A DNA stretch of 64,000 nucleotides from Vitrella brassicaformis CCMP3155. Lineage: Eukaryota; Protista; Chromerida. Below, piece by piece: positions 29,767-46,008 of this stretch (the first letter of the stretch is position 1; every line of letters starts with the position of its first letter). Location of the stretch: contig CDMY01000307.1 in NCBI GenBank assembly GCA_001179505.1, forward strand, positions 1-64,000. The letters are read 5' to 3'. A model generated the notes under the pieces. The model was given only the letters and a program-made list of their open reading frames with translations, ran no database searches and was not told where the DNA came from. The translations under genes and the position numbers were made by a program.

Positions 29767-31063
29767 TTACCCGAGGGCTCCGCGCGTCATCAAGAAAACT
29801 ACGCCAGTTGCCAACGACTTCATCTCTTTTCTCAGAGATGACTTCTCCGTGCATCTCAGGCTTGACCCTCTCCTTGCCATCACCAATTTCCTCCCAGTAA
29901 TGATCACTTTCAAGCATACCAGAGAAGTAGTCGTACGCGTACTCGTCTTCTAGGTATTCCCTGGCTGTTTTAAGAACTCATCATCCCAAAACTCCTTCAA
30001 CGTCGCCTTTTTCTCCTCATCGGTGACATTAGCTGTTCCAATCCGCAGGACTTCCATGGCCTTCTCGTTGTCAATTAGCGAATACGACGCAGGGTCGTCA
30101 TAGGAGATGCCCTCGTTCAGCATCTCGAAGCTCACGTTAAAGAGCTCCGTTAGAAGATAACACAATGCTGCATCGGTGCCCTTGAGGAAGTCAGGGCCCA
30201 CAGTCGAGGGCGTATAGTAATGCTCAAGTTGAAAGACAAAGCGCCTGGCCCTCAATTTCTCGAAGGACAAGCACAGCACGCAAAATAAGGCATCTCATTC
30301 ACCCATTTACGTACGGTGAAGCCCCTCTACTTACGTCTTTGTCCTCTTGTGTCGACTGGAAATGTTCCTTGAGCATGTCGACCAAGTCCTGCAGTGGCGT
30401 CGCCAGCGGACTAGGCCTCGCTTTTGGCTCCACTGCCACTCTCTCCCGTCGCAGATTGTACGCCAGCACAAGCCGATGGCCCGACTCGACAGGCATCACT
30501 CGATGAGGTATGTCAGCCAAGAAGGCCACCCACCGACACTGACCGCTCTCCAGAGCGGCTCGCGTCTCGTTGTTGAACCTCTCGCCATCGAACTCATCCC
30601 CATCGTAGAGCAGGAAATCTCCCCCAGAGTACTCAGTCGGAAGGAAGACCAGCAGCGAGGTAAACATCTCTTTGTTCCGCTGTGTGTCTCTGTGGATCCG
30701 AAAGTGGTCACTCTGAGCATAGATCAGCGCCTTGTAGAACTCTGCAGTCACCCGATAGCCCGGCGTCATCTCCTCCTCGACCGCACGGCAGATGCCGTCT
30801 ACGACGTTCTCCCATCGCCCACTCTGAGCGTTCACATTCACTTGCTCAGCAGGCACCTCGCGGCTGATGCGGACGTCGGGATCGACAATCGTCTTGTCTT
30901 TCACGCCAAAGGGTGACTCGTTGGCGTGCCTCCCATAGACATTCTGCAGGTCGGCGGCCGAGAAGCCAGCCCCCCGCAGCTTGAAGTTTGGCCGAAGGGA
31001 CCGTTGGACAGACGCGTTTCTGCGAGAGATGAGGGATGGGACCAGATCACTGGTACCTGCCAT
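29767..31063 (-). CDS. 2OG-Fe(II) oxygenase (prolyl-4-hydroxylase-like fold) with a C-terminal frameshift
   Basis: FYKALIYAQSDHFRIHRDTQRNKEMFTSLLVFLPTEYSGGDF...AFLADIPHRVMPVESGHRLVLAYNL gives the HxD...H triad and the 2OG-binding Arg. An A4 run at 29968-29971 separates ...DDEFLK from TAREYLEDEY... in the -1 frame. Confidence 0.8.
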
Positions 31064-31480
31064 AGTCACCACACCAACGGAACACCACCAACACAATGGT
31101 CGCTGACATGCCAGGCTGTCGTATCCCTCACACCTGAATCGCCCATGGATTTGCCTTCCTGGTATGCATGCGTACCCGAAATTAAGGGCCTCGGCGCTTC
31201 GTGTTGCTTGAGGTAGCCGAGTGCGGCATCCACCACTCTGCCGGCCTTCTCAGGGCTCACTTGCATCGACACAGACAGGCCGGTGCGTCGCCTCCTGTCA
31301 GCGGGGATGAGTCGGAGGGAGGGATGCCGCGTCGCTTGTGTGGGGATGAATGCTCCACGAGTGGATGGCAGGCTCACCGCGAGAAGAATCCACTGGAGAA
31401 GAATGAACCACATGGCGACACTGGCAGAGAAGACCTCAGCATGACCGGAGGACACGGATGAGGGAGATCACGAGAGATCC

Positions 31481-33676: not shown

Positions 33677-34730
33677 TCACTCACTGACAGAGAATTGTAG
33701 TCCATACCAGACAGCCAGCCTCTCTTTGTAGTAGCTCTGGCCTATGTACAGCCGCGTCTCAGGGTTGACCAACCGCATCTCGTCTACACAGCGCCTTACA
33801 AAGCCTGACCCAAAGGCGTTGCCCTCCACCGTCGAGAAGTCCAGCAGCACCACTGGCCGACCGTCACCAGCGCGGCTCTTCTCACACATGTATACTCGCG
33901 CCCTGAGCCGAAGCAAGCAAGCCATACTCATATATTCAATCCGCCAATAAACACACACATCTCTCTGCTGACCTGAACACTCGTCTACCCCCCAAGACGA
34001 CATTGGTGAAGGTGATTTCCTCCCCATTGCCCACCTCCGTCTTCGAGAACTCTTTGCCCTTCCACAGTGCCCCACAGATGCCGTTGACCATCCGTGCCCA
34101 GATCGACCTGCCGGGCACAGCGATGGGCAGGCCCTTCGCGAGGGCCTTGCTGCCTGGTGTGGCAAGGGGGAGGCCCGCCGAGCCGTCACCATTAAGGAAC
34201 AGCTCCTCGAGAGCACGCCGGTCGAGGCCTCTGAGATCCGCCAAAGTGCGCGGCACTGTCGCAGTCTCGGCTGTGGCTGAGCAATCAATGACAACCATGG
34301 AGAGAAGAAGGTGTATGTGCGAAAGCTGGCTTCTCTCGGCGTGTGCGTGTGTGTCTGTCTGACTGACCTGCACTGTTAAGCTTCTGCATTCGCAGAGGTC
34401 GAGTCTGTGGACTCCTCACAAATGCCTTCTCGAAGCGGATCAGACGACCCTCGCAGAAGAACACAGTAAGAACGCAGAGCAGCCAGCCAAAGCCAAAGTC
34501 GATGTCGTGCATCAGCCGTAGCTGAATCCGCAGATGCCGTAACTGCCGGAGGACAAACCTGCAGAGAACATACACCGCAGATCACGAGTTTGTTGATCAG
34601 ATCTTCGCCGGCATCGGTGTCTGCAGCCTCCCTGAACACACCTGCTCTTCGCGGGGGCGAGCAGGATCCAACAGTGCTCAGCAGCAGCGGTTTCAGGGAG
34701 CACCCTAGACGGCCTGTCCAATGAAAACAT
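33677..34730 (-). CDS. Uncharacterised protein with WxGKxF ... LDF ... DEMRLV...LYIG motifs (bacterial-type beta-barrel family, tentative)
   Basis: Exons LADLRGLDRRALEELFLNG...GALWKGKEFSK...GGRRVFR and SRAGDGRPVVLLDFS...RCVDEMRLVNPETRLYIGQSY. 5' exons uncertain. Confidence 0.55.
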
Positions 34731-35199
34731 GCACCCTAACATGCAACACACACCCCCAAAGGTGTCCAACATGAAAACACCACCCCAACATGCAACATGG
34801 ACGCAACACGCAGCACTACTCGAGGGGCATGCGATGTTACGATGTGATTGATGATGTGACGCGAGCTCACGCGCACTGTTTCAGCTGTGGACCTTCTCGC
34901 CATGGGGTCTGTCGTCGTATCATCGAATGTCCACACAATGGCCAAACACGCATGGAACCATGCGATCGATCGTGTGTAAAAAGGTACACACACATCGACA
35001 CCTACACCTACACGCTACGACTGCAGGTATACAGCTCTGGCCGAAAAACCTACCACAGAGACACCAAAAGGCACTCAAAACACAAACACGACACAAGCGA
35101 CACGAGATAGATAAAAGCGAGATAAGACGAGTGCCTGCGGCTCGCCCGCTCCCTGAATAAAAAACCCAAAACTCGCCTTTTTCCTCCCACACCCCACTC

Positions 35200-38100
35200 T
35201 CATGAAAAGGACGTCGATAGGGCCCTCTGCAGGCCCACGGCGATAAGCGTCCCAACTGTGTACAGAATTCTCCCCTGTACAGTGGACGTCATCTTCACAC
35301 CATACACCCGCCACGATGTATCTACACAACACACATACCCAGAGACACATACGTGGAGTCACACAGTCGAACGCTCGGTCGAACTTACTTGATGCTTGCA
35401 GGTATTGCACGAGCAATATTTGTTGCATCGCCTCAGACAAGTTGCCGGTGGGAGTGTCGGCTTGCGTTCGCGCCTTCTGCACAGGAGCGCCCACCTCCTC
35501 CACCAAATGCACACGGCTGCCGAGAGTGTCCTCTCTGTCGAGGCCCGCCTCCAAGTCTCCCTCCCTCCTCTCACTGTGCTCCTTCTTTACTCGCCGCCAC
35601 ACACGTAGGAGACGTCTCGTGAATCGACCGATATCTGGCCGCTTGTTCTTGTCTGTTGTGACTTCCCGTGTTGTGGCGGAACAAGCTCCTTTGGAGATCG
35701 ATTCTGCGACCGCTCTTGACATGGTGCGGTCGCTGACAAGGCCTTGCAAGCGGGTGCGTGCGTATTGGGGGGAATTGGGGGGAGGATGTTCGCCATACAG
35801 TTGATAGTGCCTGCATGCGGACATGACAGAGACAGACAGACAGATCGTTTCTTTATGTGTGGGCTTCGTTCCGGGGTTGGTGGGTGTGGGTGTGCGTGTC
35901 GTTGACCGTGAAGCAAACGAGGCGATTTCGGCAAGCCGCGCACACTTGGCGGTGACTTTCGCGGTGTCGGAAAGTATCATGCTCATGCATACGCCAATGC
36001 AGAAGAAGATTGCCACCTGCAGGCACACGACACACAGAAACATATGACACGTGTGTGTGTGTGTGTGTGTGTGTGGGTGTGTGTGTGTGATGCGTGTGCA
36101 CTGACTATGACGAAGAACAGGTCCAGCTGGCCGGTCTCGCCCACTGGTGGGCGGAAAAGCAGCAGATACAGACAGCTCAGGAAGGATATGCAGTACAACG
36201 TGCCCATCGCCGTAATAGGCAACTGTTACATACATACACACACACACATACATATACACACATCCATGAGCCAACACGAGAGAACCGACAATGCTCTCTC
36301 TGTGTGTGCCACTGACCTCCAGGATGTGCGACGACTTGTTGAGCATTCCGTCAAGGAAACGGTGCATCTCAATCAGTTGCGGCACCGAAAGGGGCGTGTC
36401 CACGTCGTCGTCCCCGGTAGTGCCATTGCGGTGTATGCGTCGGTCTCGTTTGAGCATGTGATACCTGCGATAATCAGGAGAATGATATAATGCAGGGTCG
36501 AGTGCATCGTGCTGCCTGCGTGATCCACACATGAGGACGTTGAAAGACGATCGGTGAATTGTGCATATGATGCCCGTCTGGGCGGCCACAGTCTGAAGGC
36601 ACATAATGAGATGAATGAAGTAAGATACACAACAGAGGGAGAAAAAGGAGAGGTGAGTGTTCTTGCCCTGGGGATGGGATGTCATACCATGCCGATGAAT
36701 GGTTCAAAGAGCGTGGACGCGACGTCGAGGACGTACGAGTTGATCTCGCGAAAGATCGGCCAGGTGTGCAGACCGGGAAACGCACCCCAATACTTCTTCT
36801 GTCTGTCCGTCGCAAAGGCAACTCGATATATCACGCCCTGAAACACACACAGATATATGCACACATATCTGCGTGTTCGTGCGTGTGTGTGCGTGTAGGC
36901 GTACGTACAATGTAGAAGAAGTACCCCCAGAAAAGGAGCGTGAAAACCATCGTCCACGTGAATTTGCTCCTGACGTCCCTCGTGAGCCTATTAAGGAGGT
37001 TCTTCTCGTCCTTGCACTCGCGGCGGATGAAGTCCAACGCATACAGGAAGGCGTTCCCGCGGCAGATCTTATTCGTCAAGCGGAAACGTACACACACGGT
37101 TCACAGAGTGTTCGTCTCTCTCTGTCTCTCTCTCTCTCTCTGCATATCATGTGTGCTCGCTCGCTCACCCACTGCACCCGCAAGACGGTGTATGCGACCG
37201 CGACGGCCAGCGCGATTGACCAGAACATGAATAAGAGCAGGAGGTCCTCTCTGCCGCCGCACCACTCGGGGCTGTAGCTCCTGTCACACCACTCTGGGTC
37301 GACCGCAGAGTAGAAGAAGATGATCCCATTGCAAATCGCACCGTACCTGTGTGGACGGACCCACAGTGGACCCACCCGCCCATGCACACACAAAGCATGT
37401 ATGTTGGTCCCGTCCGTGCCCTCCCTGAGTGTGGGTGCGGTGCGTGGTGCGTACCAGAGAACGATGTGAATGATAATCGGCCATATTTGTCGCACGAGGC
37501 GGCTGTCGGAAGAGGAGGGGCTCAGCCCGGCCACACGCACCCACCAGGTCTCCAAAGGCGTCCCCTGATGCATGAACTGCACTGTCTGCAAACAGCAAAC
37601 AAACAAACACGAAAGAAAGAGGCAACACACAAAGTAACAGATCAAATCAGTCAGTAATCAGTGAATGGAACACACTAAGAAACATTGCCGGGCGTACCCA
37701 CGTGTGTGTCTGCGTACGTCTGTGTGTGTGCGTACCTCGTCCAGTTCCGGTGCGTGGCACTCGTAGTGTTTCGGATGCATGAAGATCATCGCACACCACT
37801 GCAACCATCCCACACTGTCGCGCGACGACACCTGAGAGATCTCGGGCTTCAGCATCGTGCTTGTGGCAGCCACACACAGCGGTGCCTCGTAGTTCGGCGA
37901 GGGCGCTCTGGTGCTGGCACTGCCCCTCACCCTCAACTCGCTTTCATGCGGCTCGGGCATTGGTTCACATGAACTGGTGCTTATTGCCTGCCGACCCTGC
38001 TGCCGATGCTGCTGTGTTCCCCTGCGCCCGGCGTCGTCATGGTCACTGGCCGAGGTACCCGGCAGCTGCATGTCGTTGCGGAAAGCGTCGAGGGCTTGCT

Positions 38101-38299
38101 TCGCGCGGTGCCAAGTGTGTTGATCGATGCCGCCGTTGGTGTGCTGGAGGTCGGCATAGAGGGAGAGGGATGCGATGTGGATGGCCGCTGACTGCCGCAA
38201 CGCATCGGATTGACATTCCCTGCCGCAGGGGACGCTGCCCAAAGGCGGCCGATCAGCTGTGTCGTCCTGCTTCTCTCTCTCCACACTCGCTAATGTCAT
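35200..38299 (-). CDS. Gustatory-receptor-like 7TM ion channel (GRL / 7TMIC superfamily, DUF3537-like)
   Basis: Long N-terminus, then six hydrophobic segments (IWPIIIHIVLWY, LLLLFMFWSIALAVAVAY, MVFTLLFWGYFFYI, FIGMYLTSFISLCAF, AMGTLYCISFLSCLYLLLF, VAIFFCIGVCMSMIL). In-phase C-terminus QQILLVQYLQAS|NTSWRVYGVKMTSTVQGRILYTVGTLIAVGLQRALSTSFS* fits the TM7a/7b pattern. Start may lie further upstream. Confidence 0.75.
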
Positions 38300-38699
38300 C
38301 GTGTTCGCCGTGGTCTCACTGCTGCTCCTCCCGCTAGCAAGGTTGACTCATCGGGAAGGACCCGTCGTGGAGCTCGCATAATAGCTCGCGCTCTCCCTTG
38401 CCTTCGAGTTCGCCACAGCGTCAGGTTTTGCCTGTTTTCAAGGCCCTTGGCTGCCCGCCAAAGAGCTCCCGCTGCAAAAGCTTCAATTGCGGACGCTATT
38501 GAAGATGCGGCGCGCAAGATCCGGCACATCCAGGACGCAACTCGCCCGCAGGAGGCGCCGCACGATCCGCGCGCCCCTTTGGCATCAACAGAAGGAGGGA
38601 TCTTTGGGTAGTCTTCCGTCAGCTGAGGGCGCCTCCTCAGATGTCGGCAATGATGCAGAAGGCGCATCTCGGCACAGCCCTCACGCATTCTTCGTCTGG

Positions 38700-39219
38700 A
38701 TGGCGGCTATGTGGAGTCCGAGCCTCATAGATGCCCTCCCTGCCGCAGCCGCACATGGGCCGGCGCAACAGCGTTCTCTCCCTCAGCAGCAGCAGCAGCA
38801 GCAGGCGTCTAAAGGCGAAAGAAGCGTGTTCAGGCCTGTTGTCTCAGCAGCCGTCGTCAGCTGCCCCCTGAAGTGTGCTGGAGGAGGTGTCGGAGCTGGT
38901 GCAGCAGCACTACTGGGACACGTCGCCCAACGGCGCAGCAGAGGAGTGGGAGGGCATCGTGCAGAAGTACCGCAGCAAGGCGCGTGACATGGACAACCGG
39001 CGGAGCGGCTCAGAGGACTACCGCTATTACACGGCGCTGCAGGAGATTGTCGACGAGCTCGACGACCGGTACTCCCGCGTGCCAGCCCCGCCGGCCGCCG
39101 CGGAGGTGCTGAGGGCGTACGATGTGTTGGGGGTCGGCATACACTTCAAGAGCGAAATGGACGGCCGGCGGCACCAGGCAAATCAAGGCGGTTCCGCGAG
39201 TACCTGGATGGGCGGCTGA
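38700..39219 (+). CDS. Hypothetical protein
   Basis: Coding-like ORF LEEVSELVQQHYWDT...YRYYTALQEIVDELDDRY; the link to the upstream poly-Q segment is not resolved. Confidence 0.4.
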
Positions 39220-41133: not shown

Positions 41134-41496
41134 CTCCAGATGACAGACAAATGAAGGAAGGAAACCTGCCTGCACACGCCCAACACACACACTCACAGAG
41201 ATGCGTCAAAGCATTTCTTTCGCCTTTTCTTTTTGCTGCCTACTGCTCTTGACTCTTCACCAATGCCTTCCTAACGCCTCGGCTCCCGCGGTCACTCCAT
41301 TCAATCCTCAAACTTTTGCGAGCTCAAGGGAGATCCGCAGTTCCGAAAAAGCGTCGAAAAGGCCTGCAGGAGCCATCACAAGACTACTGGGTTCATCCCC
41401 AGTGAAGACGCGGCGTCAAATCGCCGCAGCCTGAGCCTCATCAATGGTGATCTGACCTCGTTGCTATCCATCCATCTCATCCTTTGTCTGGTAGTC

Positions 41497-46008
<4,512 letters not shown>

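Follow-up and report, generated by a model that had tools for sequence, protein, structure and literature searches.

Gustatory Receptor-Like (GRL) proteins of protists underpin the claim that the odorant and gustatory receptor channels of insects date to the last common eukaryotic ancestor, and six such proteins were described from Vitrella by Benton, Dessimoz & Moi 2020 (eLife 9:e62507, PMC7746228). One of the six, CEM01650.1, is named VbraGRL4 in Table 1 of that paper, its sequence is included in the supplementary files, and it is covered both there and by Benton & Himmel 2023. GRL proteins are placed with Or, Gr, and DUF3537 proteins in the seven-transmembrane ion channel (7TMIC) superfamily, and the authors of the published GRL/7TMIC work state that channel function is unknown for most 7TMICs. 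The DNA analyzed here (the window) comprised 64,000 nt of Vitrella brassicaformis CCMP3155 (assembly GCA_001179505.1, contig CDMY01000307.1, positions 1 to 64,000), and positions 38299..35200 on its minus strand were found to be the expressed, 11-exon gene of VbraGRL4.

The coding span runs from an ATG at 38299 to a TGA at 35202-35200 and consists of 11 exons separated by 10 GT..AG introns of 66-150 nt. The spliced translation has 720 amino acids (aa), every letter of which is equal to CEM01650.1 (UniRef100_A0A0G4EU86, UniProt A0A0G4EU86), whose GenBank source organism is Vitrella brassicaformis CCMP3155. As the spliced product, CEM01650.1, and VbraGRL4 are the same, without a single sequence difference, the finding rediscovers a published gene; it is correct and already known. 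A first-pass annotation of the window, made from the letters alone, had described a Gr/Or-like protein and stated that such proteins were reported in a few protists, which was true, and it left unrecognized that this very protein was already among them. The identity emerged from the published protist GRL lists, against which that annotation had proposed a check. VbraGRL4 has thus already been published with its sequence and name, a prediction of its topology, and a comparison of its structure. The additions made here are modest. Transcript contigs give direct evidence of all ten splice joints and thereby of every exon, among them the one encoding the seventh transmembrane segment (TM7), and a fold match to odorant receptor (OR) and gustatory receptor (GR) structures solved in 2021-2024 was obtained without animal sequences, removing a caveat of the 2020 authors.

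A phase-1 intron at 35388..35322 separates the last exon (35321..35200) from exon 10, which ends at 35389, and the joined frame reads ...LLVQYLQAS before the joint and NTSWRVYGVKMT...LYTVGTLIAVGLQRALSTSFS after it, up to the stop codon. A further intron of 66 nt (36530..36465, GTGTGG...CGCAG) lies inside an apparent single exon and had been missed both in the first-pass annotation and in the first gene model. That gene model, with 10 exons and a 742-aa product, was rejected because two relatives, P0001 and P0002, read ...FNVLMYHM... where it had 22 extra residues; these residues, lacking in both relatives, are therefore encoded by the additional intron, and the product has 720 aa. The two relatives were returned by a word-index protein search using the stop-free frame-0 stretch 36703..35078 as the query. 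P0001 is a 449-aa protein called from a 2072-nt contig of the Joint Genome Institute (JGI), and P0002 is a 774-aa protein of Vitrella brassicaformis CCMP3155, CEM10760.1, which is VbraGRL5.

The gene is transcribed, and its TM7 exon is used. Only exons of the window are covered by the JGI contig L001 (sample 3300017148), whose junctions coincide with the modelled exon boundaries, also at the last intron and at the AATAAG acceptor of intron 3. Of the public runs aligned to positions 35100-38400, X7 and X8 yielded spliced contigs covering the full length (2741 and 2666 nt), and X1 yielded shorter ones that were also spliced. Eight intron joints were listed with CT..AC ends on the plus strand, equivalent to GT..AG on the gene strand, and the other two introns were taken from contig coordinates. 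No joined exon form, including the joint of 35389 to 35321, was found in the DNA run X3. The run libraries carry no RNA label on record, and it is the intron-less contigs from which transcription and use of the TM7 exon follow. A pseudogene or an unused last exon was rejected, as the joint into the last exon was present in spliced contigs of X1, X7, X8, and L001.

The alignment of L001 to the window showed a few single-base differences (99.1-99.8% in three blocks), and a short stretch of the 3' untranslated region (UTR) of L001 matches the window (34710-34763) at two places offset by 15 nt. These deviations, which leave the protein unaltered, point to a difference between strains or to an error of assembly. 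The exon 2/3 junction coincides with a 25-N assembly gap (L001:153-177), and because of this gap, the protein called from L001 begins inside TM2. The acceptor of intron 3 (37068-37168, minus strand) is CGAATAAG, without a pyrimidine tract and ending in AAG, whereas the other nine introns end in CAG or TAG; it is used in the spliced contigs.

VbraGRL4 has seven hydropathy peaks, at residues 225-243, 268-286, 329-347, 380-398, 469-487, 499-517, and 699-717, and the predicted model has long helices matching all seven. Six hydrophobic segments precede a long loop, and TM7 is encoded in the last exon, just as the first-pass annotation had read the gene when it counted six transmembrane segments and a final exon visible only after phase-1 splicing. 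Lysine and arginine residues numbered 10, 8, and 30 in intracellular loops (IL) 1, 2, and 3 (48 in total) versus 2, 5, 1, and 0 in extracellular loops (EL) 1-3 and the 3-residue C-terminus (8 in total). The published TOPCONS analysis of VbraGRL4 (PMC7746228 supplement) gave an N-terminus inside (N-in), seven transmembrane segments, and a C-terminus outside (C-out) by the consensus, Philius, and PolyPhobius, while the published OCTOPUS prediction was N-in with six segments only, TM7 being missed and the C-terminus placed inside. From the crude residue count and the published TOPCONS result, VbraGRL4 is predicted to be N-in and C-out, the inverse of G protein-coupled receptors (GPCRs), which agrees with the cytosolic N-terminus proposed from the letters alone. 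The predicted cytosolic N-terminal tail has ~220 aa. IL3, between TM6 and TM7, measures 181 aa between the hydrophobic cores (residues 518-698), and its unstructured part in the model is shorter, ~115 aa (roughly 546-660), because TM6 and TM7a extend as helices. The earlier figure of ~120 aa for this loop therefore describes the unstructured part well and understates the full loop.

Structure prediction gave a strong match of the modelled 7TM core to Orco, OR, and GR subunits. A full-length AlphaFold2 model built on a 4-sequence alignment was poor (pLDDT 39.8, pTM 0.27), and Foldseek found no clear match with it, BmGr9 being returned at a probability of 0.57 only. A trimmed model was then built for residues 186-720 (N-terminal 185 removed), with VbraGRL3, 4, 5, and 6 as the only sequences in the alignment; its pTM was 0.53 and its pLDDT 53.4, with values of 60-76 in the transmembrane helices. 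In the trimmed model, TM4, TM5, and TM6 reach far into the cytosol and TM7 is divided into TM7a and TM7b, as in Orco. In a Foldseek search of the PDB, its top 18 chains were insect OR, GR, or Orco at probabilities of 0.99-1.00 and TM-scores by target of 0.41-0.60 (BmGr9 8vc2, 0.60, with a root-mean-square deviation of 5.4), and unrelated chains came next at a probability of about 0.1. As the alignment held no animal sequence, the match is independent of covariation within animal GRLs, a caveat that the 2020 paper attached to its own models (PMC7746228). The published trRosetta runs for VbraGRL3-6 failed because there were too few sequences (PMC7746228 supplement). The sequence is included in the ESM Atlas, where it lies nearest to arthropod odorant receptor (0.96) and DUF3537 (0.95) clusters by language-model features and to DUF3537, Gr64a-like, and Gr28a clusters by structure, with TM-scores by row of 0.70-0.76 (DUF3537 0.70). 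The assignment to a Gr/Or-like 7TM family made in the first-pass annotation is thus borne out by the structural match and by the identity with VbraGRL4.

The closest relatives of VbraGRL4 are its paralogues VbraGRL5 (CEM10760.1, P0002), VbraGRL6 (CEM25255.1, P0006), and VbraGRL3 (CEM19221.1, P0004), with identities of 57%, 28%, and 23%, respectively. Within Vitrella, VbraGRL4 groups with these three proteins, which share its architecture and the conserved blocks of TM2, TM4-6, and pre-TM7/TM7 (WRVY, Q712, R713) but are encoded at other loci and differ in loop lengths. The segments best conserved among VbraGRL3-6 are TM4-7, the helices that would form the anchor and the pore. No second GRL copy was found in the window using tblastn. 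With VbraGRL5 as the query, phmmer found four proteins among 1.84 billion cluster representatives, every one of them from Vitrella; a word-index search with the family profile found Vitrella only; and a metagenome DNA scan with the pattern WRVY[GD].. gave 14 pattern matches, of which 0 were confirmed. In these searches, VbraGRL3-6 are without a detectable sequence relative outside Vitrella.

A sequence link from this group to the Gr family runs through VbraGRL3, which passes the 7tm_7 (PF08395) gathering threshold of 26.6 bits with 29.7 bits (33.5 bits without its N-terminus) in a match spanning TM5-TM6. VbraGRL3 is related to VbraGRL5 (phmmer, E 1.4e-44), and the link of the group to the Gr family is a transitive one; the sub-threshold 7tm_7 match of VbraGRL4 falls in the same region of the profile. 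VbraGRL3 is the sole 7tm_7 passer among the four paralogues, although the 2020 paper sets VbraGRL3-6 farther from the animal GRLs.

The pre-TM7 helix motif of VbraGRL4 resembles that of plant DUF3537. In the published trimmed alignment, plant and green-algal DUF3537 proteins are aligned with VbraGRL3-6 over the pre-TM7 region, LLVQYLQASNTSWRVYG standing opposite ALVEYLRHNNKGITLYG for example, and the pattern columns are common to the rows of AthaAT2G21080, AthaAT4G03820, CpriGRL1, and MpusGRL1. The pattern L..YL......++YG, which the first-pass annotation had taken as a mark of DUF3537 and protist GR-like proteins, accordingly stands. Plant and green-algal DUF3537 proteins are like VbraGRL4 in having seven transmembrane segments, an N-in topology, a long IL3, and L(V)xYL.....G.x.YG before TM7 in the same alignment columns, whereas VbraGRL4 differs in its long N-terminal tail, its alveolate origin, and the lack of a PF12056 match. 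Of the features of DUF3537, the protein thus shows the long IL3 (181 aa) and the pre-TM7 motif ..L.YL.....G...YG.., without matching the Pfam profile. With the solved insect receptors (such as Orco 6C70, MhOR5 7LIC, BmGr9 8VC2, and DmGr43a 8JM9; Pfam 7tm_6 and 7tm_7), VbraGRL4 has a sequence identity of 8-13%. In contrast to them, VbraGRL4 lacks the Y and F of the Gr TM7 motif, carries a 220-aa N-terminal tail and a 180-aa IL3, and has a phase 1 rather than a phase 0 intron before TM7.

By family and fold, VbraGRL4 very probably belongs to the 7TMIC superfamily. The chances that it is an ion channel are about even, by analogy with the insect receptors, and its service in chemosensing by zoospores, which the first-pass annotation had suggested, is plausible but has a low probability. 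In the mechanism considered here, modelled on Orco, MhOR5, and BmGr9, four VbraGRL4 subunits would surround a central cation pore lined by TM7b, TM7a and the cytosolic extensions of TM4-6 would form an anchor domain, and the cation pore would be opened by a ligand bound within the helix bundle, in a pocket on its extracellular side. That VbraGRL3-6 constitute a Vitrella-restricted, DUF3537-like 7TMIC branch forming a ligand-gated cation channel for zoospore chemosensing is, taken as a whole, an unlikely proposal; if true, the insect chemoreceptor superfamily would gain its first functional member from a protist.

Several results weigh against the family assignment and the channel mechanism. 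VbraGRL4 stays under every Pfam gathering score, with 7tm_7 at 9.6-10.2 bits (14.8 for the fragment P0001) against the required 26.6, and an exon-by-exon Pfam scan gave no meaningful match. The Pfam scan also gave no match to PF12056 (DUF3537) at E<=10 for VbraGRL4, its parts, or its paralogues, and a profile of the four paralogues run against PDB sequences did not find OR/GR, returning only chance matches with E>1. The Gr TM7 motif TYhhhhhQF reads T705-L-IAVGL-Q712-R in VbraGRL4, so that two of the four motif positions are kept (T705 and Q712) and Y and F are replaced by L and R, respectively; two positions are likewise kept in most Vitrella GRLs (PMC7746228). The intron before TM7 is in phase 1, not in the phase 0 typical of animal Gr genes; according to the published GRL/7TMIC work, intron positions are not conserved between kingdoms. 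All three features of the Gr family proper, namely a 7tm_7 score above the threshold, the full TM7 motif, and the phase-0 intron, are consequently absent. The confidence of the models was middling (pLDDT of 39.8 at full length and 53.4 when trimmed), and PHTF is an example of a protein with the 7TMIC fold and without a known channel role.

The alternative that survives best is a protein with a true 7TMIC fold that is not a chemosensory ligand-gated channel; it might be an intracellular or organellar channel, a constitutively open channel for leak currents or ion homeostasis, or a scaffold that does not conduct, and the same possibilities exist for plant DUF3537 and PHTF proteins. It is a serious contender, with a probability somewhat below even. 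The resemblance of the pre-TM7 motif and long IL3 to plant DUF3537, the function of which is unknown, is consistent with it, as are the half-kept Gr TM7 motif, the N-terminal tail and IL3, both foreign to insect receptors, and the statement of the authors on the channel status of most 7TMICs. However, every solved member of the fold is a tetrameric ligand-gated cation channel, and the anchor and pore helices (TM4-7) are the parts best conserved among VbraGRL3-6, which argues for the ligand-gated channel instead.

It is far less probable that VbraGRL4 has no kinship with Or/Gr and that the resemblance of this 7TM protein to them arose from convergence or modelling and not from common descent. 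Such an origin would accommodate the identity of only 8-13% to the solved receptors, the lack of a significant direct Pfam or PDB sequence match, and the moderate confidence of the model, and it would have to be set beside the fold match obtained without animal sequences. A GPCR-type receptor with an N-out topology shares the seven transmembrane helices and was rejected as having a negligible probability, since the protein is predicted to be N-in, its fold matches Orco/OR/GR, and neither N-out nor a GPCR helix bundle was found. None of the outcomes that the first-pass annotation had named as refuting its reading (an N-out topology, no structural match to Orco/Gr, or an unused last exon) applies.

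The exons, all on the minus strand, divide the protein as follows. Exon 1 (37736..38299, aa 1-188) encodes the mostly low-confidence, predicted cytosolic N-terminal tail, and its joint from 37736 to 37585 was found in X7, X8, and L001. The spliced contig of X7 extends upstream to 38364, and thus the 5' UTR covers at least 38300..38364. Exon 2 (37455..37585, aa 189-231) ends in phase 2 and encodes the first half of TM1, the second half of which is encoded by exon 3 (37169..37346, aa 232-291) together with the Cys-containing EL1 and TM2. Exon 4 (36909..37067, aa 292-344), which follows the AATAAG acceptor and whose joint from 37169 to 37067 was found in X7, X8, and L001, encodes the basic IL1 and most of TM3. 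The end of TM3, EL2, and the start of TM4 are encoded by exon 5 (36688..36837, aa 345-394), and the end of TM4 by exon 6 (36531..36592, aa 395-414), which is followed by the 66-nt intron 36530..36465, its joint being found in X1, X7, and X8.

IL2 is encoded by exon 7 (36317..36464, aa 415-464), and TM5, the short EL3, and the start of TM6 by exon 8 (36106..36222, aa 465-503). Exon 9 (35907..36016, aa 504-539), ending in phase 2, completes TM6 and encodes the helix by which TM6 extends into the cytosol. Exon 10 (35389..35810, aa 540-680), ending in phase 1, contains the long IL3 and the first part of the conserved helix before TM7 (...QQILLVQYLQAS). Exon 11 (35200..35321, aa 681-720 and the stop codon) begins with NTSWRVYG..., followed by TM7 (aa 699-717, 35268..35212), in which T705 and Q712 occupy positions of the Gr TM7 motif. 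The 3' UTR spans 34710..35199 (about 490 nt), as the transcript contig L001 ends at 34710, and the X7 and X8 contigs go >400 nt past 35100.

The neighboring open reading frames (ORFs) are functionally unrelated to the GRL gene and do not constitute a gene cluster with it. They include an ORF at 30299-31096 on the minus strand with a Pfam match to 2OG-FeII_Oxy_3 (E 1.3e-08), an ORF at 38875-39219 on the plus strand with a match to Tricorn_C1 that is below the cut-off (E 3e-04), and an ORF at 41461-42834 on the plus strand with a match to PI3K_C2 (E 4.9e-12).

The introns of the gene (35322-37735, minus strand) show a dinucleotide asymmetry, in which the 5' half is richer in CA in nine of the ten introns and the 3' half is richer in TG in nine of the ten. 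In intron 8, for example, the 5' and 3' halves contain 17 and 7 CA and 1 and 8 TG, respectively. For four introns, the fold is more stable than that of mononucleotide shuffles, with z from -2.1 to -4.2.
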